Assembly (NCBI GenBank): GCA_025603075.1 | Contig: MU626330.1 | Coordinates: 1 to 64,000 of the forward strand | Direction of reading: 5' to 3' | DNA: 64,000 bases | Origin: Neoconidiobolus thromboides FSU 785 | Taxonomy: Eukaryota > Fungi > Entomophthoromycota | Part shown: positions 8,445-63,160 of the stretch, in pieces | Position numbering within the stretch: position 1 is the stretch's first letter | Layout: every line of letters begins with the position of its first letter | Notes under the pieces: generated by a model | Seen by the model: only the letters and a program-made list of their open reading frames with translations | Databases searched by the model: none | What the model was told of the DNA's origin: nothing | Translations under genes and position numbers: made by a program

Positions 8445-10985
8445 TTAAACACCGCCACCAGATCTTGTTGTAGAAAATTTGTTAAGAGGGGTTAATGGAA
8501 TATTAGAGCTTGAGTTTTGAGGGGCCTTGATGTATGAAAGGACTTCTAAAAATTCGTAAAATTCTACAGAGCCTAGCTTATTTATATTGGCCTTATTTAT
8601 AACTTGCTCTAATTGAGATGGTGTTAAAGTGGAAAACCCAGAATGTTCTAATACCTTTGAAAGATCTTTATAATCTATATGACCGTCCTTATCACTATCA
8701 TGCTTAGAAAAGGCTTCACGATAGACAGATAATTCTTTTGGTGTAAAATTTCCTCTTGAATAAGATGGAGTCAAACCATTTAACCCTTCAGCATTTTGGG
8801 TGGCTTCATCCTTATTTAATCCCATAGTAGTAAGGAATTTCAAAGCATTATCATATTCTTTGTTTTGTCTGCTCTTATCCCAATTTAATTCAGCACTCAT
8901 TATACTAATTACCCTTGGCAATGCCTCTTTAGCGGCATGAGAATTCAAGAAAGATAAACGCGTACGACGAGCTAAAACATCTACTGCAGTGCATGCATAT
9001 TCATTTTTAACGGCGTAACGTACTTCTGCTTCAAGATAAGGATAAGATGCTGACAATTTTGTGCCAAATAATGGCCAACGTTGCCCAGTAACTTCGCAAT
9101 GAGAAGCAACACCCCATGCTCTATCACCATAATTGGTTGCTAAATGTTTAGCAACATCTGTTTCCAAACCGAAATGCTGTATAAGTTTGATATACATATT
9201 TTTTGAATATCCGTGAGCTCCAATTAATTTCAAAGATTCAGTTGCACATGCATTATTAGGTTTAAGGTTAAATATTTCAACTGCTTTATCTACAGTTTCC
9301 TCAGCCATAGCACGATAAGTTGTCCATTTTCCACCAGCAATAGTGATAAGTTTATTTTTAGATACATTAATCATATGATTACGTACTAATCCTTCAGTAC
9401 TCTTAGCTGATGGGTCTCTTACTAATGGTCGAATACCAGACCAAGCCGATAAGACATCACCACGACGTACATTAATATCTACAATGGATTAAAATTAACC
9501 TTTTTTAGAGCTTTAATATTACCTGAGCTTAAATAACGACGAATTTCATCAAGGATCCATTCAATTTCTTGCTCTTCTGGAATTGGCTCACTAGTAACTG
9601 TTGTAGGGGTATCGGTTGTTCCTGCTACGACATTACCTTCCCATGGCAAGAAAAAGATTACTCTACCATCTGAAGTTGATGGGTCAAGCATACCCATAGA
9701 TGAAGGACTGTAATAGTTTGGTAAAACAATATGTACTCCTGCACTAGGTGCTACTATCTCTTTTGATTCTTTTTCATCCATCTTTCTGAGGCCATCTATT
9801 TTAATTGTCAATTTTCATAATTGTTATTTTTTTTGAAAATACCTGTAAATGGACCAGTTGCATTAATAACGCCCTAAAAAATCAATATCACTTTATTTAC
9901 TAGTTAACTATATCTTTTACCTTAGCTTTAATTGAATATTCTTCACCAGTTAGAACATCCTTAACTTTTGCTCCACGAACAACATCTCCACTCTCGTCTT
10001 TTTCTTTAATTAATTCTATAACTTCAGTGTGATTTACTGAAACTGCACCTTGGAATACAGCAGTAAGAATCAAAGAAATATTCATTCTTGAATCATTATG
10101 TTGTCCTAACAAATTAATTTAAACTATATTTCGTTAATCCTGAATATATATTTACCATCATAATAAACCATAGAACCTACAAGTTCATCTTTTTTCAACA
10201 TTGGGAATGATTCAAGTGTTTTTTTTCTAGACATGAAATAACTACTTTGAAGTCCTTCACCACCAGCTAGTACATCATATACTTTAGAACCAGCCCAGAA
10301 ATAAGGTACTTGCCACCATCTATAAATTAATAACTGTATTTTAGAAACAAATAAAAGTTTACTTATAAATTGGCAACATGATAGGTAATTGTGATGAGAG
10401 ATGTGGCGCAGTATGTAAGAAGATAGATCTTTCATGAAGAGCTTCAACTACAAGTTTGTATTGCTCATAATCTAAGTTCCTAAATGCTTTTTCCAGATAA
10501 CGAACTCCTCCGTGTACTAATTTGGTTGATTTTGACGAAGTTCCTTAATCGAACATGAACAAAACATAGTATAAAAATATAAAAAAAGTACCTGAAGAGT
10601 AATCATCTCTTTCAACTAAACCAACTTTTAAGCCTCTTGATGCAGCATCTAAAGCTATACCTGCACCAGTTGCACCACCTCCAACAATTAATAAATCAAA
10701 CTCTTGACTCTGATCTTTTGAGCTGACTTTAAGTTTTTCAATCATTTCCTCACGAGAAGGAGGGGTCCAAAAGGTATGTATTCCTTCAGGTTCATTTGAG
10801 GAGTCTAAAGAGATGGCACCTTGTGGTCTTTTAAGGATAGGGTGGTCAGGTGAAAGCTGATATGGTTTTTTTTGTGAATTGTTTTTTTGATAGCTAATAT
10901 AAGCTGTAGCACCAGTTACAGCTATAATAGAAGTTATTGCAATAGGCTTGATAGGGATTTTGCCCTTTAATAGTCTCCAAGACAT
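8445..10985 (-). CDS. GUT2: Mitochondrial FAD-dependent glycerol-3-phosphate dehydrogenase with C-terminal EF-hand pair, multi-exon
   Basis: [32 protein letters not shown] motif; [13 protein letters not shown]; DVLARRTRL; EF-like loops [12 protein letters not shown] and [12 protein letters not shown]. Confidence 0.95.
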
Positions 10986-11751
10986 TTGTTTAATTTTTTG
11001 AAATTGAAAAATGGTGATTAAAAAATATTCCAGTTATTTTTATACTTTTAATTTGGTAGCTATTGCATCGAGGTTTTTTTATTTTTATTTTTTATTTTAT
11101 TCTTTAAAATTGCTCAATCATTTAGTTTGTTTAAACGAAGTCACTTTTTTATCTTATCTTATGTTAGCCTTATTCTCTAATAGGGCTAAGGTTTTTTTAT
11201 TTCCAATAAAAATTACATGAATTTAACGTAGATTAAATCCGGATATTCCACAATATAGACACTAAAGATTGTATTAAACTAATGCGGAAAAACATCAAAT
11301 AATTACATAAAACTAAGAATATTTAATAAAACTATTATAAATAATCACTGCTATTAAGATATATTTGAGCCTATACTATTTTTATTAAAAATATATGTTA
11401 TTTTAATATATTGATTAATATATTGTGTACAATAAACATAAAAGTGTATATAGATATAAAGAATAGATATATATATTGTATTAAGTAATTAACTAATAAT
11501 AGAAGCCAATTCTGCTATCGTTATTGTAACTCAGTTTTATACACAATTTTAATAAATTATATACAGTTATTAAGTTTTCCAAATATTCTATTTTTGCGCA
11601 GCTTTGAAAAAAATTGTTTTATTAGTTAGTGGATATAAAATCAAATTTATAAAATTTAACCATTTAAACTTGACTTTAAACGTTTTAACTCTGTATATTA
11701 TGGCACATGTCAAATTATTTTCAACACTCCGCAAAATATATAACATACGAA

Positions 11752-11845
11752 GTTATCTTTTGATTTTATTACTTTCTTATTTTTTTAAGCGCTATTGAGC
11801 AAAAAAGATATTAGTAAAATCCTTAAAAAAGACATCCTCCCTGTA
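11752..11845 (-). mobile_element. Degenerate MITE-like element copy
   Basis: TTTTTTAAGCGCTATTGAGC...TTAGTAAAATCCTTAA...CATCCTCC. Confidence 0.7.
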
Positions 11846-12220
11846 TGAATATTATTATTATAACCCACCTACTAGTAAAACTAATTGCAGTTATGTACCT
11901 TTATTCTTTTAATTTGCTGCCAACTCCTTCTATAATGAGTTCATAAGCTATATATAATCCCTTAATCTGTAAATTCATCATAAAAGGAACTGGTAGTAAA
12001 TTAAAAAAGAACAAAGGCATCTAACTGCACCCAGTCCTAAATGAAAGTGTTCTAATATTTTGCTCACTTTTTAGGTAACTAACTTTTAAACATAGTAAGT
12101 CTCTGCAAAAAACGTAATTATATTAAATGATTTTTGCAAAAAAAGGTGCACAAAATCAATTTATAAAAAAGTTATAGTGATGTATATTATTGTTAGTTTG
12201 TAACAGTTTCAAAATCCATA

Positions 12221-15200
12221 ATGTTTAATAGCTACGGGCATGATATATTATTAACTGAACATTCAGAAGTATCATTTCAAAAATATGATGAATTGATTGA
12301 TAAGCTTCTAGAAGATGAAGAACGACATATTGATAAAAAAGTTGAACTTATAAAGTTGTTTTCATATATTATTAAAAGAAATTGTCTTGTCATTTCTAAA
12401 GAGCCGCAACTCTGGCTTAATGTAATCCCTCTTTCTCTTTATCAATGAGTAATTAAAAACCTTTAAATAGTTCGTTGTTGATTTTTTGTTAAAAAACCAT
12501 CAGCTTATTGAAGGTATTTTACTTCAAAATTCAAAATTCAAAATTAAAACTATCCTCTAGAAATTATAAAGGACCAAAAGTTAAATGGATTCCTTTTTTC
12601 GGCACTTTTGTCTGCGTTTGGACAAACTTTCATAATAGGCGAAAGTGATGAAGGAGAAATAGAGTAATTAAGTTTTTGAGTTAAAAATATTATAACTAAA
12701 CTTCTAGCTATTATAATTTGGTTCCTTTTGAAAAGAAAGATGCCATCTTGCCTAAGTTTATCAAAGTATGTTTTTTTATCTATATCAATATTTATTAAAT
12801 TATTTTTAAGGAGATTTCTATCACATTTAAAAATAATAAAGAGATCGAAGTGTTTTCCTTAAACGTAATAAAAACATTGATAAGTGAATCTCCAAAAAGT
12901 TCACTGCCTTGTTTGCTAATACAATTTATGCAAGTTCAACACGAAAAGATGATAAAGTCGATTAATTTGTATAACACTGTTGAATTTCCTCTTGACTTTG
13001 ATTTTGAAACCGGTGTATTGTATTTGCTTGATAAAGAAGACAAAAATAAGCTAGATGCTCAGTTGGAATATATATTAAAAGCGTTAATTGGTACATATAT
13101 AAATGTATGCAGTAATTCTAAAGAAGATAATTATATGCTTAAAGAAGGTAAAATATTATTTGTTATTTTATCTATAAAAAGTTTGATTGATTTTTAGATT
13201 GGAAACGCTATATACTTCAAACAATAATTAATATCGTTCTAAGGTATAATATTCCAGTTGAAAGTAAAAAACTTTTTATAAGATTTAATATGAAGTTTAC
13301 TTATTTATACTAGTGGTATTGTTATATATTCAGAGTATGGACCTTGAGCAATTAGTAGAAGCAATATCAAAAGATTTTGAATCACAATATTCATTATTTA
13401 CAAATGAGTAATATTATTAAATTTCTCTATTATTAGTTAACATTATTAGTTCCAAAACTGAGCCATTAGTTAGTAACTTTGAAATCATTTTAAAACGTAT
13501 ATTATTGATTGATTCTTCAATTGCAAGAGTTGAAGTATTGGTTGTTTTATATATATCTTTAGATAAAATCTTACAAAATCAAGAATATAATGGAATAACA
13601 CCAATTGTACAATTATCAAAATCAGTTATATTTCACATAGTAAACAATTTATATTTAAAATAAATTTAATATTTATTTAATAGATAAAAGAATTGTTTTC
13701 ATCTCCTTCACGTGTGATAACAATTGATATGAGTCTAGAAAGTTATTTGAGCATAGAAGGATGGGAGCCAGATAGAACAAATATTTATAATAATGAGCAA
13801 GAAACAATTAAAAGATGGATATCCACATTACTTTATTATATAGTAGAAACATTAAATATAAATAAGTCATCAATGAGTAAATTTAGGTTAGATACGTTAA
13901 TTGATTTATTGAGCGAATTACTTGTGAACAACGTTTTTAAAGAGGATTATATTGAGTATCTTTCTTATATTTTAAATAACTTACAATCAAAGCTACCTAT
14001 CGAGTTTCTATTGAATTCGGATAAAGAAAAATTACTCAAAATACCCTCAATATATTTTTCATATACTATTTTTAACAAAATATTACATATGTGTAATTAT
14101 GATGACTCTATGTAAGCTACATATTTATGATATAAATACATATTTATTATTATTTTAATAGAGTAGAAGATGTATTAAACAAGAATGAAACTGGTATAAT
14201 AGGGCTGAAACAGCTAAGTAATATTTTTATACTTAAAGCAACTGGGATAATTTCATATGATAAATTGCCTGAGATCAATCTAAACATTGACTATTCTGTT
14301 AACAATGATTCGATTACTATGTCGTTAATTATAATGTATCATTTTATTAGATACATTGAAATTAACATTAATACTACAACTGTTGTTCCATACTTAACAC
14401 TCTATAATATGACTGGTATATCTCTCCAGCTATTAACTATTGGAATGAAAGTGCGATACCAGCTTAAACAAACTAGTGTATTATATAAAACTCTTATAAA
14501 ATATATTAAAAAAGTGTTATTACATATTCATTATGATTTCAAATGGCATCAATCATTAAGTTTAGTTTATGAATGGGGTATAAAAACCAAGCTTCCTACT
14601 TATGGGATTAAGAGGACAGACACAAAAAGTGGAGTGGAGCAAAGTGATAATAATAAGCGACGTCATTCTTTTTATGAGGAAGCAAAACTTCATGGGTCTA
14701 TTTCCTTTCAAAACCATATTAATTATGCACCTTTTACAAAACAGCTAAGTGAATCAATTGTTAATTTAGATTCACTATATATCATTAACATTGTTAAAGC
14801 ATATATGTAATTATTTTAACTTTTATTTTGCTTAATATTAATTTTGTTTAATAGCTCAAAAGATGAAAATATAGTTAACATAGTCAAATCGAATATTATG
14901 GATTACCTTGATATTATAAATACATTTATTTCTTCAACTGATAATGGTAATTGCTATAATCTTAATACTATTTTCTACTTTTATACTGATTTTTCTCATT
15001 ATAGAGTTAGAAAGAAAAAGGTTATTTTTCCTTATGTGTAAAGATTTTGATCATTTCAGTAGTTCAATCAAAGACGCATTTTACTTGAAAAAAGATGACT
15101 ATAAAAAAAAAATCGAAGCAGATGCCAAAAACGATATGTAATTTTAATAATTTTATATTATAAATAATTAATAATAATTTAGGGATATTTTTGTTTTTGA

Positions 15201-15695
15201 TATCTTTAAAGATAACCCCATATTAATTGAGTTTATTCAGATTCTAAGTTATGGTAAATAGCACTAACAATATGCGTTATCATTTTTTAATATTTTGTTT
15301 CAGATTTTACTTTATTCCATCAGTCTTCTGGTTTTTGGAAAAGACTACTACTTTTAATGATGCAATTCTGGAACATTAAAAGAGAGGGTCCTTCTTCTTC
15401 ATTTCCATCTGAATTGTATTTAACTTGTTCCCTTATTAAATGCTTGAATATTGTTAAAGCGCTGCCAAGTCCATTCAATTACGTTGTTGAATTGTTACCA
15501 CTTATAAATTACAATGAAGTTGGTGCTATTTTATATAAAAGTATTTGGCCAATGTTCCTTGTTTTTGAATTTAAAGAGACTAGGCCTGAGTTTTTACCTA
15601 ATCAAGAGGAAGTTATGAAGCCTATTTTGGATGCGTTAAGAGCCCACCCCTTAAAAGTCAAAAAAATTATCAATTTGTTTCAAAAGAGTTTATAA
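12221..15695 (+). CDS. INTS5: Probable Integrator complex subunit 5 homolog (~900 aa, many short introns)
   Basis: ORF pieces in the 5' part join in frame across ~50-nt GT-AG introns (checked by eye). Last exon WNIKREGPSSSFPSELYLTCSLIKCLNIVKALPSPFNYVVELLPLINYNEVGAILYKSIW has the W..R..P..L..C.L..LP..E..EV..L.S(V/I)W spacing of the animal INTS5 C-terminus as recalled. Confidence 0.68.
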
Positions 15696-15894
15696 TAAAT
15701 ATTAAGTAAATTTATTTTTTTATTAAATTATGAAAAATTATTATCAAAATCAATTAAAACGCTATTAATAAAAGTTTAGAGTAAATACCACTAGTTTATC
15801 ATACAGTACTAGTAATAAATTGAATTGTAACATGTGCTACTACATAATTGAAGTGTAATTATATTAATTAAAATTAAAACTGAAGCATTCTAAC

Positions 15895-17178
15895 CTAAGG
15901 TGACACTGGCTTAGAGGAAGTTGCATTATCTTCCTTTACATCATGAATTATCGTCAAGTTCTTTTTAGAATCAAGCTCATGTAATCCAATCCCTTGCAAA
16001 GCTAGTTCTTCTTCAAGTCTTATACTTGATATATTATTAGATTCATTCAAGTGTTCATCTAATTCTGGCGTTTCCTCTTCCCCTGTTTCGTTTTGACTCC
16101 AACTAGGTTTACGCATCATTTCTCTGAATGTTTCACTAAGCATAATGGCGTCATTAGCAGTGAGATTGGTCTGATTTAATGAAATTGGTGACACGGAATC
16201 TGTTGTTAAGGCACTCGACCTAGAGCCGGTCATCCCAAATCCTGCAGAAGAGGTACTACCAAGCCTTCTAGCACCAACCCCTCCATTCTTGCCCCCATTA
16301 ATAATATAACTTTTTTCTGTATTTTCTGGAATCATTTTGGCTTTTTTACTTTTTCTTCTCCAAATAACAATCAATGGTATTAGCAACAATATTAAACCAG
16401 CTAATGCTAATAAGACAATCCCATAAATTGGAAGTGCAAGTTCATTTGATGGTTGTTTTTCATCAATATTTCCTTGATCATTTGTTGGGGTAGCAAAAAA
16501 AGTACCATTATTTACTTCAGTACTACTAGGTGTAGATGTGCTTTTTGTTTTTGAAGTCATTGTTGTCTCCGTGGAAGTTGATGAAGGTATGGGTGGATTA
16601 GGATCAATTATATTAAAATTAGGGCCTTTTGAAGAAACATCATTAGAACTCGAGCTACTAGATTTGATAACAAACCATGCTGACTTTCGAATTGGACCCT
16701 TAGTATTTTTTCCATCAAGATTGCTATCAAATTGATAAAATTGGGCTTTTGTAATTTTTACTGAAAAAGTTCCATCTTTATTTTGAAGATCCTTTCGGGT
16801 AAATATGGGATCTCTGGAATTATCTGAAATATAAAGGGAGATATCTATAAGGCCATTTGTTTGAATCGACGGGTAATCTTTATTCCACTTAAGTAAATGA
16901 ATGTCATTAACTGCCCATGAGTCATTCTCCTGAGGAGAACAGTAAAGATCAAACCCTCCACAGGAACGAGAAGCTTCTAATAAATATATTAGTACTCATA
17001 TTACATCATACAATATCAACTGCTATATACCTTTATCAACTGGCGTCAAATTTAAGTCTTGTGTATCATTACTCACGCCCAAAATATTACCTTGAAAGAG
17101 ACTTAAAGCTATCAATGTAGCTGATATTATCCGTAGATTAATTGAGTATAATAAATTCGAACCTTTAAATTTAAGCAT
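15895..17178 (-). CDS. Type I single-pass membrane protein (signal peptide, small Cys-containing ectodomain, Ser/Thr stalk, TM helix, cytosolic tail); one intron
   Basis: ATG at 17178 gives MLKFKGSNLL...IIsATLIALSLFQG; after the intron EASRSCGGFDLYCSPQENDSW...KWNKDYP runs in frame into ORF 15895-16560; TM IYGIVLLALAGLILLLIPLIVIW followed by RRKSKK. Confidence 0.8.
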
Positions 17179-27174: not shown

Positions 27175-28521
27175 ATGAATAAATTAACATTTTTTATTCT
27201 ACTTTATTTAATGGAGTTCAAAAAAATATATCTGTGGGCTATATTGTTACTTATAGCTATTTTAGGCGTGGATGCTCACGGTCATCACCATCACCACCAT
27301 CATCATGGTAGTGATACGCCTAAGGATCATGCCCATGCGAATTTTCATAAAGGAGAGATTCCCAAAGATCATTTTCACGCTGGTATACATAAGGATCATG
27401 CTCATGGTCACAGTCATACCCATCATCACGACTCTAAGTTTGAAAGTAAAGTTAACTATATCCTTGACTTATTGTTCCCTAGTCAAAGCCCAATGTTCAA
27501 CTCTTTCTTATCTACATTTTATATCTCGTTTTTTCCAAATATATTATTGCTATTTGTTCCAAGTCAAATTAGAGCCTCAAGCCTTAATGTGTTAGTAAGT
27601 TTTGCTGTAGGCGGATTATTAGGTGATGTTTTTTTACATCTTCTTCCCCATACTTTCATGGATGCTTTTAGTGCTGGTCTCAATCCAGAAGAACTAACTA
27701 TAAGAAATATATGCATTGGGTTGGCAATATTTGCTGGGGCTCTTAGTTTCTATTTTTTGGATAAGCTCTTAAGAATTGTATCTGGAAATAAGGGTCATAG
27801 TCATAGTCATGGACATAGTCATAATCACACTCATTCGCATAAAGGTGAGAAAGATTCAGCTACAAGTACAGGATTAGATTCCAAAGAAGAATCAGGCTCC
27901 TCGTTAAGGAAAAGAAAGGAAGAAAAAAACAATAAAGATGATTCAGATAAGCAAGATAACAAGGAAATCAAACAAGTGAAATTATCGGCTTATCTTAACC
28001 TTATCGCAGATTTTTCACATAATTTTACTGATGGTCTTGCTATTGCTGCTTCTTTTTATTTTTCTCGTTCTATTGGTATTTCTACAACCATTGCTGTTTT
28101 CTTTCATGAGATTCCTCACGAAGTTGGTGATTTCGCTATTTTGTTACAATCTGGCTTTTCTCGTTTAGAAGCTCTCTATTCTCAATTTATAACCGCAATA
28201 GGAGCCATGTTAGGCACAGCAGCTGGAGTTGCAATCCAAGAACTATTAAACAATCAAGAGCAAGTGGATAATAATGAAATTTCAAAACTATTTGGATACT
28301 TACCTATTTCTGCAAGTGATCTTGTATTACCAATTACTGCAGGCGGCTTTTTATATATTGCAACAGTCTCTGTTATACCTGATTTACTTGAAACACCCAA
28401 TGATTTAGAGAATGAAAAGAAAGAAACAAGTAAACTCGCTTTAGGAGTTCAACTTTTTAAAGAAGTGCTAGCTATGTTATTAGGGGTCGCATTGATGGCT
28501 TTAGTATCATTATACGAATAA
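27175..28521 (+). CDS. YKE4: ZIP7/LIV-1-type zinc transporter, intronless (start may be Met at 27211)
   Basis: His-rich N-terminus and loop; SFAVGGLLGDVFLHLLPH; HNFTDGLAI; HEIPHEVGDFAIL. Confidence 0.95.
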   Translation: MNKLTFFILLYLMEFKKIYLWAILLLIAILGVDAHGHHHHHHHHGSDTPKDHAHANFHKGEIPKDHFHAGIHKDHAHGHSHTHHHDSKFESKVNYILDLLFPSQSPMFNSFLSTFYISFFPNILLLFVPSQIRASSLNVLVSFAVGGLLGDVFLHLLPHTFMDAFSAGLNPEELTIRNICIGLAIFAGALSFYFLDKLLRIVSGNKGHSHSHGHSHNHTHSHKGEKDSATSTGLDSKEESGSSLRKRKEEKNNKDDSDKQDNKEIKQVKLSAYLNLIADFSHNFTDGLAIAASFYFSRSIGISTTIAVFFHEIPHEVGDFAILLQSGFSRLEALYSQFITAIGAMLGTAAGVAIQELLNNQEQVDNNEISKLFGYLPISASDLVLPITAGGFLYIATVSVIPDLLETPNDLENEKKETSKLALGVQLFKEVLAMLLGVALMALVSLYE

Positions 28522-45510: not shown

Positions 45511-47277
45511 ATGGAGCAACAAGATATGTCAAATTCAAAGAAAATAGGCCATAGATGTGATCAATGTTATCAAAGTCACGTCAAATGCGACAAGTTGCTG
45601 CCTAAATGTTCAAGATGTCTTAGGAGGAAAACTGATTGTACTTTTATAAGAGAGACTGTATATAATAAAGAGATAGACGCTCAGTATGGGTCATATAAAA
45701 GGCAAGTCGCACGCAAAGTTAATGTTAAAACAGAGAAGAAATTTATATATGTAAAGGAAAATAAACTTAGTTTAAAACAACTTCAATCAAAAGGAGAGAT
45801 TGAGTATCAACTATTAAAATTACCTAAAGGTTATAATTTTTCATATAATATCCTTGGGATATTTAATAAGTTCCAAAGAAAACTATTACTGGAAAACTTG
45901 TTAAATTTTATTCAAAATCCGTCTCCATTTTTTCCTAGTAAAGGTCTAAACCTTTTCATCACATTAATAGAAAAACTGAATTTAGTATCATATAAACCTA
46001 TAAAATTGATTTCGATATCCAAGGTACCAGAGGAAACTGAACTCAATATCAGACCAATTTTAAGCCAGGCCATAGTCAACTACTTTAAAGTTATCAACAA
46101 GGTGTTCCCCTTATTCGATGAAACAAGATTCAGTTTCATTTCACGCTCGTTCCATTTAAAACTAGCAATACTTACAGGTGGGCTTTTATGTATGGAGCAA
46201 ACTAAAACAGTAAAGGGTTTAATTAAATATTTTGAGGGAGAAATTTATAGCTTTGTTAAAAATATTCCCAGAATTAAACCCAGTTTAGAAAACATACAAC
46301 TAATTCTTGTATTAGTTGGGAGTATATCTTATTTTCCATGGGTTAATAGTCTTAAAGAGTTTCTTCTATTTCACTGCTATAGAATATCGTTTATAATAGG
46401 ATTAAATCAATCTTCGAGCAAGTTATCAAGAAAAATTAATATAGAAAGGGTTTATACTTATTGCATGTTAAACTTTTATTATAATGGCAATTTAATAACT
46501 TATGGTTCATATGCTGCTGAACCTATACTTCCTTTAGAGTTGAAAAAGATAGAAAATGATTATACGTATAAATTCTCAAATTATAAGTTTAATTTTAGCA
46601 AAAATGATAAAGAGATACAACAATATTGTTTTTTGAAATTACAAGAATTTTATTATATATTGAGTACCCTATTTTTTGATTTACGATTGATTAAAGAGGA
46701 AAGTACAAGGCAAAGGGAAGATCAATTAAAATTTGACAATATTTTAAAAAAACTTTCATTTAAAGTATTGGTTATTAAAGAAAAATATACTAGGATTTTA
46801 GATGATCTTATAGTAAAAGTAGATAGTCAAGGCTTAATAGGATTTATCAAAGAGTATCAGTATTGTATTATTCATTTTTTCCACCAAGTCAATTTTTATA
46901 TTTATACTATCCAGTTTAATATATCTAAAGAAAAAAAGATTTATGAAATGCAAGAATATACAACTGGTAAAAATATTAGCATAAATACATCATATCACAT
47001 TGAAAATATACTTTTAAAGTGTTATTTAGCAATTGATAGTGCTGTTATGAATTGTCATAATTATACACTTGCCTTCGATTGTCCGCTCGTTTCTACTTGT
47101 TTGATCTTTATGATGCGGTTTGGAGGAAATAGTGAGGAGAATTTGATCTACGTTCAAAAAGGAAAAGAATTTCTACACTCTTTATTGAAGTCACCTTCTG
47201 CTATGGGAATATGTGAAATGAATTTAAAGCTCCTTGAAATCACCAGTAAGTCGCTAAATACTATTAAAATTGAATAA
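45511..47277 (+). CDS. Zn(II)2Cys6 transcription factor, intronless
   Basis: CDQCYQSHVKCDKLLPKCSRCLRRKTDC binuclear cluster; 588-aa ORF. Confidence 0.92.
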   Translation: MEQQDMSNSKKIGHRCDQCYQSHVKCDKLLPKCSRCLRRKTDCTFIRETVYNKEIDAQYGSYKRQVARKVNVKTEKKFIYVKENKLSLKQLQSKGEIEYQLLKLPKGYNFSYNILGIFNKFQRKLLLENLLNFIQNPSPFFPSKGLNLFITLIEKLNLVSYKPIKLISISKVPEETELNIRPILSQAIVNYFKVINKVFPLFDETRFSFISRSFHLKLAILTGGLLCMEQTKTVKGLIKYFEGEIYSFVKNIPRIKPSLENIQLILVLVGSISYFPWVNSLKEFLLFHCYRISFIIGLNQSSSKLSRKINIERVYTYCMLNFYYNGNLITYGSYAAEPILPLELKKIENDYTYKFSNYKFNFSKNDKEIQQYCFLKLQEFYYILSTLFFDLRLIKEESTRQREDQLKFDNILKKLSFKVLVIKEKYTRILDDLIVKVDSQGLIGFIKEYQYCIIHFFHQVNFYIYTIQFNISKEKKIYEMQEYTTGKNISINTSYHIENILLKCYLAIDSAVMNCHNYTLAFDCPLVSTCLIFMMRFGGNSEENLIYVQKGKEFLHSLLKSPSAMGICEMNLKLLEITSKSLNTIKIE

Positions 47278-60862: not shown

Positions 60863-63160
60863 ATGAGTCCATCCAAAATTAAAGACGTATCTATTAATAG
60901 TAATAAAGATGTATCTATTATTGATATTAAAGATGAATCCTTCAAGAACTTTGATCTTGAACCTTTAATATTAGATAATATTAATAAACCATTTAATCAA
61001 AAGAGTATACCAACTTTAGTATTATATGATGATAAAGGTTTACAATTATTTGATAAAATTACCTATTTAGATGAATATTACCTTACTGAAGCAGAGATTG
61101 ATATATTAAAGCGTAAATCGGATGATATCATCAATCTAATTCCTGATGATTCTTATGTTATTGAATTAGGTTCTGGTTCTTTAAGAAAAACTAAGGTAAT
61201 CTTAGATGCTATTGAAAAGAATAGAAAAGGAGTCAATTATTATGCTTTAGATGTCATGGAAAAGGAATTAGTAAAATCTTTACAAAATTTAAAAGATTAT
61301 AGTAATTTAAAATGTCATGGCTTATGTGGTACTTATGACGATGGTATGAAATTTATTCAACAATTGCCAAAAGAAAAGAGAAAGACAATATTATGGTTAG
61401 GCTCTTCTATTGGTAATTATAATCGTATTGAAGCAGAAGAATTTGTTAAAAAAATTCATCAATGTTTAAATCCAGGTGATTTATTTATTATTGGTATTGA
61501 TTTACGTAAAGATAGTAAAAGAATATCATTAGCTTATAATGATCCAAAGGGAGTATCAAGAGATTTTATATTGAACGGTTTAAATAACTGTAATAATATA
61601 TTAGGTTTAGAATTTTTTAATTTAAATAATTTTGAATTTAAAAGTGTAGTTAATGAAGAGAAAGGGTTTCATAATTCTAGATTTATATCAACTTGTAATC
61701 AAACATTAAATCATCCTAAGAAACAATTAAGCATTGAAATTAAAAAAGATGAAGAAATCGATATTGAATATAGTATTAAATATTCACTTAATGAAATTGA
61801 TGGTTTAATAGAAAATACAAAGTTTTTAAAACAATCACAATGGTTTGATACAACTAATAGCTATTCTTTAAATGTTATTTATAAACCTCCCTTTAATTTT
61901 AGTAAAATAATCAATTATTCAATTATACCTAGTATAGTTGAATGGGAAGAAATCTTTCAAGCTTGGGAATATATTGTATTTGATTCAATTAAAGAAGAGG
62001 ATTTATTAAAACAACCTATTTCTTTACGTCATCCTATATTATTTTATTTAGGTCATATCCCTGCCTTTTTAGATATTCAATTATCTAAACATTTAAAATG
62101 GAATTTAATTGAACCAAAAGAATATACTACTCATTTTGAAAGAGGTATTGATCCTGATGTAGATGAACCATCTAAATGTCATTCTCATTCTGAATTACCA
62201 AAAGAATGGCCAACTAGAAATCAAGTAATTGAATACCATGATAAAGTAAAACAACGATTATTTAATATATTAAATAACAAAGAAATGATGGAAGATAAAA
62301 GGTTATTAAGAGTCTTATCTTATGTATTTGAACATCAAGTAATGCATTTAGAAACTTTATTATATATGTTAATACGTTGTGATACTATTCAATATAAAAA
62401 TATTTATAAAACAACCTTTAATAATAAAATTGAAAAAATTAATGAAGCTCAATTACTTCCAATTAATGAAGGACAAGTTATGATTGGTAGAAATGATATT
62501 GAATCTGAAGATTTTAATAAAAACAATAAATCTTTAGATTATTTTGGTTGGGATAATGAATCACCTCAAAGAGAAGTTAAAGTTAAAGAATTTCAAATTC
62601 AATCTAGACCAGTTACTAATGGAGAATTTTTACAATTTTTAAAAGAAACAGTTAATAAAAATCATCCAGCTCAATGGTCTCCAATTAATGATAATAATAA
62701 TGAATTTGAATTTAAAGTAAGAACTTTATTAGGTTATGTAAGTATGGAAGAAGCTGAAAATTGGCCAGTATCTGTAAGTTATGAACAAGCTAAACAATAT
62801 TCTGCATGGAAAAATATGCGATTACCAACAGAAGAAGAATTATTATTATTTTATAAGCAATATAACAATAACAATGATAGTAATATAGGATTTAAAAATT
62901 TTCATCCAAAACCAGTAAATGAAATACAAACTTATGGAGATGGTTGGGAATGGACTAATACGTTATTTAGTAACTATGAGGGTTTTATTAAATCAGAATT
63001 ATATCCCAATTATTCAATTGATTTCTTTGATAATAAACATTATATATTATTAGGTGGTTCATATATTACTCATCCAAGATTAATTCATCGTCAAACATTT
63101 CGTAATTGGTATCATAAATCATATCCTTATATGTTTTCTATTTTTCGTTGTGCTATTTAA
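60863..63160 (+). CDS. EGT1: Ergothioneine biosynthesis protein Egt1 (histidine methyltransferase + sulfoxide synthase fusion), intronless
   Basis: EgtD-like LYDDKGLQLFDKITYLDEYYLT, ELGSGSLRKT, GSSIGN; sulfoxide synthase HPILFYLGH, ERGIDPDVD, HQVMHLET; FGE-type C-terminal domain. Confidence 0.95.
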   Translation: MSPSKIKDVSINSNKDVSIIDIKDESFKNFDLEPLILDNINKPFNQKSIPTLVLYDDKGLQLFDKITYLDEYYLTEAEIDILKRKSDDIINLIPDDSYVIELGSGSLRKTKVILDAIEKNRKGVNYYALDVMEKELVKSLQNLKDYSNLKCHGLCGTYDDGMKFIQQLPKEKRKTILWLGSSIGNYNRIEAEEFVKKIHQCLNPGDLFIIGIDLRKDSKRISLAYNDPKGVSRDFILNGLNNCNNILGLEFFNLNNFEFKSVVNEEKGFHNSRFISTCNQTLNHPKKQLSIEIKKDEEIDIEYSIKYSLNEIDGLIENTKFLKQSQWFDTTNSYSLNVIYKPPFNFSKIINYSIIPSIVEWEEIFQAWEYIVFDSIKEEDLLKQPISLRHPILFYLGHIPAFLDIQLSKHLKWNLIEPKEYTTHFERGIDPDVDEPSKCHSHSELPKEWPTRNQVIEYHDKVKQRLFNILNNKEMMEDKRLLRVLSYVFEHQVMHLETLLYMLIRCDTIQYKNIYKTTFNNKIEKINEAQLLPINEGQVMIGRNDIESEDFNKNNKSLDYFGWDNESPQREVKVKEFQIQSRPVTNGEFLQFLKETVNKNHPAQWSPINDNNNEFEFKVRTLLGYVSMEEAENWPVSVSYEQAKQYSAWKNMRLPTEEELLLFYKQYNNNNDSNIGFKNFHPKPVNEIQTYGDGWEWTNTLFSNYEGFIKSELYPNYSIDFFDNKHYILLGGSYITHPRLIHRQTFRNWYHKSYPYMFSIFRCAI

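Follow-up and report, generated by a model that had tools for sequence, protein, structure and literature searches.

Does an entomophthoralean fungus carry a gene for INTS5, a subunit of the Integrator complex? Integrator is described as restricted to metazoans in a 2022 review (PMC9006982), and a 2023 review credits plants with a smaller version only (PMC10533338). The locus that raises this question lies in Neoconidiobolus thromboides FSU 785 (Entomophthorales), within the first 64,000 nucleotides (nt) of contig MU626330.1 of assembly GCA_025603075.1, read on the forward strand; this whole stretch is referred to here as the window, and its coordinates are those of the contig. An original prediction had placed at 12221-15695 a multi-exon gene for a helical protein of about 900 residues, probably INTS5, which an open reading frame (ORF) track splits into pieces. 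Our analysis supports that identity through C-terminal sequence homology and a predicted fold, and we consider it likely that the gene is a highly diverged INTS5 orthologue. N. thromboides very probably keeps part of an RNA polymerase II (Pol II) termination machine that yeasts lack.

In the ORF listing, the + strand of 12221-15695 appears as many short ORFs, and the gene model comes instead from spliced contigs. A search of public runs found part of the stretch in nine of them, the best of which contain 58-69% of the sampled words, as complementary DNA (cDNA) without introns would give. We placed contigs of four public runs from two studies (X1, X2, X3 and X5; the RNA label of these runs is a guess) on 12100-15800 and obtained 13 joints from them. 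With a phase check, these define the following coding features:

12221-15695, + strand: whole INTS5-like coding region, 14 exons, 2853 nt, 950 codons plus stop
12221-12421, 12471-12513, 12561-12663, 12708-12765, 12811-13147, 13198-13263 and 13314-13407, + strand: exons 1-7, from spliced contigs and phase check
13450-13639, 13684-14111, 14162-14806, 14855-14946, 15005-15137, 15183-15253 and 15304-15695, + strand: exons 8-14, from the same evidence
12221-13263, + strand: exons 1-6, an N-terminal extension of 269 codons, with contig X1 collinear from 12100 and the phase open
13263-15695, + strand: exons 7-14, equal by their translations to public model K502DRAFT_235221 (protein P0001, 681 residues, 'hypothetical protein')

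All 13 introns are absent from the run contigs, which are therefore copies of spliced RNA, and a 3751-nt contig of X1 spans junctions with 0 mismatches to the window. The introns (12422-15303) all run from GT to AG, fall in a narrow size range of 42-58 nt and have mostly GTAA donors; their G+C content is 15.9%, against 27.5% in the exons, in a very AT-rich window with about 25% G+C around the locus. Tracking the phase exon by exon, split codons included, we found 0 in-frame stops in the 14-exon frame, whereas the same exons read in the other two frames contain 83 and 127. In DNA of equal composition, exons 1-6 (269 codons) would be open by chance with a probability of about 1e-11. Upstream of the ATG at 12221 lies an in-frame stop (12194-12196), in sequence that is collinear with contig X1. 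The INTS5-like gene is intact, and cDNA-type contigs contain its spliced form. The predicted multi-exon gene, split by the ORF track, has exactly the bounds proposed for it; the predicted length was about 900 residues, and the phase-tracked exons give 950.

Only part of this gene is in the public record. The eight translations of exons 7-14 all occur exactly and in order within P0001, whose start is an internal methionine with its codon split over the exon 6/7 junction; in an exhaustive HMMER search, this NCBI protein of N. thromboides was identical to exon 14 over the query. GCA_025603075.1 annotates only 13263-15695 at the locus, with exons 1-6 left without a gene call. Because the RNA-supported model starts at 12221, the deposited protein K502DRAFT_235221 is N-terminally truncated, and the model adds 269 N-terminal residues.

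Two further features of the transcripts were seen in the contigs. Across 12850-15380, two versions of the transcript are present in each of the runs X2, X3 and X5 (organism B), one near-identical to the window and a second that is about 7% different, mostly by transitions (for example 14 changes in 192 nt), with slightly shifted joints; example sites are 12885-12975, 13857-13932, 14270-14327 and 14335-14526. Both versions are spliced, and they could be alleles, paralogues or mixed strains. Contig X1 also runs about 814 nt upstream of 12100 (window about 11286-12220). This extra length may be a 5' leader of unusual size; alternatively, a transcript may arise in the 1.2-kb divergent intergenic region that the gene shares with a glycerol-3-phosphate dehydrogenase gene, and overlap here.

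What relates this protein to INTS5 is its C-terminal part. We searched exon 14 exhaustively with HMMER against 1.84e9 representatives, and four non-self proteins matched at E<1e-3, all of which match the Pfam profile INTS5_C (PF14838) over the same profile region as exon 14 itself (E 1.5e-4, 21.1 bits, profile positions 581-654 of 703). The relatives are as follows:

P0003, 965 residues: NCBI "Integrator complex subunit 5 [Massospora cicadina]"; exon 14 E 3e-8; INTS5_C 33.6 bits
P0004 (with P0006), 356 residues: Entrophospora sp., a glomeromycete; exon 14 E 4.6e-4; INTS5_C 44.6 bits
P0002, 165 residues: fragment on a Logan contig of 1061 nt; INTS5_C 19.1 bits, sub-threshold; resembles the Massospora sequence
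P0005, 907 residues: on a Logan contig of 2890 nt; exon 14 E 9.7e-4; a complete INTS5 (INTS5_N 8.5e-73, INTS5_C 5.6e-154)

BLASTP aligned P0001 443-677 with Massospora 704-945 at E 3e-22; the 253 columns are collinear, show 26% identity and reach both C-termini. A profile built from the fungal C-terminal sequences only, with no animal sequence in it, retrieved human INTS5 837-953 from the PDB (7cun_E, 8rbx_e) at E 1.7e-10; its next match, at E 0.1, was noise. Two nested regions of the gene can be delimited from these comparisons:

14775-15680, + strand: C-terminal ~240 residues (end of exon 10 to exon 14; P0001 443-677), collinear with Massospora cicadina INTS5 704-945
15130-15569, + strand: core INTS5 C-terminal block by profile and fold (end of exon 12, exon 13 and the first two thirds of exon 14; P0001 about 526-640)

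The core block, whose counterpart in human INTS5 is about 837-953, contains the invariant residues F573, W574, P586, L589, L605, P606, P608, L615 and W633 (P0001 numbering). Given the relatives in the search of 1.84e9 representatives, the BLASTP alignment with Massospora and the match of the fungal-only profile to human INTS5, the C-terminal domain is established, at the sequence level, as homologous to INTS5.

The similarity is of a particular kind. The original prediction aligned the last exon almost without gaps to human INTS5; the region was right (human about 877-947), but the plain pairwise similarity is not significant, as phmmer with exon 14 as the query returned no INTS5 from PDB chains. 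Significance appears only via profiles and intermediate sequences. When five relatives were compared with the locus by tblastn, matches were significant on exons 13-14 only, and a word-index protein search with exon 14, P0001 and Massospora INTS5 returned these queries themselves and no further relatives.

Low-complexity, AT-biased proteins can inflate weak matches, and the sole Pfam match here is sub-threshold, so we considered whether the likeness is chance, or the gene a decaying relic without function. Neither sits with E-values of 3e-8 in a library of 1.84e9, 3e-22 pairwise and 1.7e-10 for a profile against the PDB, with W, P and L positions conserved in common with human INTS5, or with a 950-codon frame that is unbroken over 13 correctly spliced introns, or with the presence of spliced contigs in four runs from two studies. 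The match statistics and the intact spliced frame effectively refute this explanation, to which we assign only a negligible probability.

Predicted structure points the same way for the C-terminal part. An AlphaFold2 model of P0001:430-681, built from a fungal-only alignment, has a predicted local distance difference test (pLDDT) score of 70-83 over the conserved core. A Foldseek search with this model, which was among the checks suggested along with the prediction, returned human INTS5 as its top seven matches (probability 0.94-1.00, but with weak E-values of 0.2-0.5), and the matches that followed had a probability of at most 0.21. On human INTS5 776-957 the model superposes at 2.6 A over 117 residues, and the modelled C-terminal fold is superposable on solved INTS5. 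Of the 950 residues encoded by the gene, the 681 that were folded are predicted to be all-helical, as the prediction of a helical protein had it. The model of these 681 residues as a whole is poor (mean pLDDT 46). INTS5 ranks far above other solenoids as its match, with a collinear alignment; but confidence is low and the input alignment contained true INTS5, and we count this match as supportive only. In the ESM Atlas, whose own model of the protein has a pLDDT of 0.43, INTS5 came up for the whole protein at rank 20 (0.88), which we treated as uninformative.

How much of the protein beyond this block is INTS5? Several results speak against an orthologue over its whole length. About 710 of the 950 residues (exons 1-6 plus P0001 1-440) carry no unbiased INTS5 signal, and the whole-length structural match is not independent evidence, because the model is poor and its alignment contained true INTS5. 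We ran Pfam on each exon of at least 30 residues singly and on P0001. Exon 14, the only exon with a match to any Pfam family (INTS5_C), does not reach the curated gathering score of that family (21.1 against 27 bits), and the whole P0001 matched no family at E<=0.1. Upstream of exon 10, no exon matched INTS5 by Pfam, PDB phmmer or tblastn. Exons 1-6 (269 residues), tested singly at 14-112 residues each, matched neither INTS5_N (PF14837), the second profile that the prediction had put forward as a check, nor human INTS5. A language-model search with residues 1-440 returned generic helical scaffolds only, below 0.9, and no INTS5.

The Pfam shortfall is a matter of the sensitivity threshold and is not an argument against homology, which the other tests establish. 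Beyond INTS5 itself, exons 1-6 showed no detectable similarity to anything when searched singly against Pfam and the PDB, and phmmer of exons 1, 5, 9 and 10 against PDB chains returned no INTS5. The exon matches that phmmer did return (PLBD1, de novo helical bundles and adenovirus IIIa) were rejected as chance.

These results would suit a lineage-specific helical scaffold that bears an INTS5 C-terminal domain and of which the rest, and possibly the function, is no longer that of INTS5, perhaps outside Integrator altogether. The unmatched residues and the sub-threshold Pfam score are what such a protein would give, and the whole order may have remodelled it: the match of Massospora INTS5 to the human protein is confined to residues 753-890, its first 700 residues are unmatched to bona fide INTS5, and Pfam did not detect INTS5_N in it. 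The protein nevertheless agrees with INTS5 in length, in its predicted all-helical make-up and in where the block sits; the whole-length model, for all its low confidence, still ranks INTS5 far above other solenoids and collinear with it; and every match in 1.84e9 representatives is INTS5-like. We know of no other protein family with an INTS5 C-terminal domain, and solenoid scaffolds commonly diverge fast outside their interfaces. We therefore regard a mere domain-level relationship as unlikely, and favour a diverged orthologue. From sequence comparison, entomophthoralean INTS5 is evidently recognisable by its C-terminal block only.

An INTS5 orthologue in a fungus could also have come from an insect host by horizontal transfer instead of vertical fungal inheritance. 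Neoconidiobolus and Massospora are both insect-associated, Integrator is usually called metazoan (PMC9006982), and exon 14 is about as close in identity to animal-type INTS5 (37%) as to Massospora (38%). The gene itself looks otherwise, with 13 short AT-rich introns typical of the genome and a base composition like that of the genome that holds it. Homologues are also found in the glomeromycete Entrophospora, and the extreme divergence from animal INTS5 outside the C-terminus is unlike a recent transfer. We consider transfer very improbable, and retain vertical descent of a diverged INTS5.

What such a protein would do can be proposed from animal Integrator, in which INTS5 and INTS8 form the shoulder module and are needed for PP2A recruitment (PMC9006982), INTS2, INTS5, INTS6 and INTS8 hold PP2A in position, and the N-terminal helices of INTS5 are bound by INTS15 (PMC11062913). 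By analogy, the fungal protein would have no catalytic role and would serve as a scaffold, joining an INTS8-like partner to build the shoulder of an Integrator-type complex (PMC9006982, PMC11062913). This shoulder would help to dock the PP2A phosphatase beside an INTS4/9/11 RNA endonuclease, and the endonuclease would cleave nascent Pol II transcripts, namely small nuclear RNAs (snRNAs) and prematurely terminated mRNAs. The conserved C-terminal block is probably the surface that anchors the protein in the complex, since it is the sole part constrained enough to stay recognisable in this order. The broader proposal, that entomophthoralean fungi retain a working Integrator-PP2A including the shoulder, with INTS5 constrained only over some 120-240 C-terminal residues, we hold at about even odds. 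If it is true, the block would be an ancient, indispensable INTS5 contact surface, and these fungi would offer a system in which to study snRNA processing and promoter-proximal termination of the Integrator type.

A full-text literature search turned up no paper that deals with INTS5 in fungi or with Integrator in early-diverging fungal lineages. The databases already hint at it, in that the Massospora protein is auto-annotated as INTS5 and the Entrophospora protein carries INTS5_C; a 2026 preprint makes a parallel point on the histone 3'-end machinery of early-diverging fungi (10.64898/2026.10.14.759114). A fungal Integrator is thus not a new concept but an undocumented one, and the gene described here is a very divergent member of the INTS5 family, not a new kind of system. 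What is gained is an RNA-supported model of 950 residues in place of a truncated 681-residue 'hypothetical protein', a defensible name for the K502DRAFT_235221 protein, and a conserved C-terminal block that points to the most important part of the scaffold. Yeasts form snRNA 3' ends via Nrd1-Nab3-Sen1, and it becomes a testable question whether Integrator does this work in zygomycete-grade fungi.

Rfam and tRNA scans of the window returned no family, no tRNA and no snRNA gene. Around the INTS5-like gene, the window contains the following features, of which the single-exon ORFs made a fungal origin likely:

8445-9371, - strand: single-exon ORF, C-terminal part of a glycerol-3-phosphate dehydrogenase (DAO_C) with an EF-hand pair
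15895-17178, - strand: convergent downstream gene in the public record, 409 residues, weak match to Psg1 (PF14610); its stop lies 200 nt from that of the INTS5-like gene
27175-28518, + strand: single-exon ORF, ZIP zinc transporter
45511-47274, + strand: single-exon ORF, Zn(2)-Cys(6) factor
60863-63157, + strand: single-exon ORF, Egt1-type ergothioneine synthase (Methyltransf_33, DinB_2 and FGE-sulfatase)

Among known systems, the reference is human INTS5 (PDB 7CUN chain E, 7PKS, 8RBX, 9EOF), part of the shoulder module of Integrator-PP2A. The fungal protein resembles it in total length, in its predicted all-helical make-up and in the equivalent position of the conserved block, but has no detectable pairwise similarity to the human one, no recognisable INTS5_N and no sequence-level match over about 75% of its length. 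The closest full-length relative is INTS5 of Massospora cicadina (KAI0244419.1, 965 residues), from the same fungal order. In both fungal proteins only the C-terminal block is recognisable as INTS5, and upstream of the last ~250 residues they have no significant similarity to each other. Their coding composition is opposite, GC-rich in Massospora and AT-rich in N. thromboides, and the Massospora protein passes the INTS5_C cut-off (33.6 bits) whereas that of N. thromboides does not; exon 14 nevertheless falls on the INTS5_C region that the Massospora and Entrophospora proteins match above threshold. Outside animals, the plant DSP1-4/CPSF73-I complex is a reduced Integrator that processes snRNA 3' ends (PMC10533338). 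Its listed components are homologues of INTS7, INTS3, INTS4, INTS9 and INTS11, with INTS5 not among them (PMC10533338), whereas the fungal gene belongs, if its assignment to INTS5 is right, to the shoulder/PP2A side of the complex.
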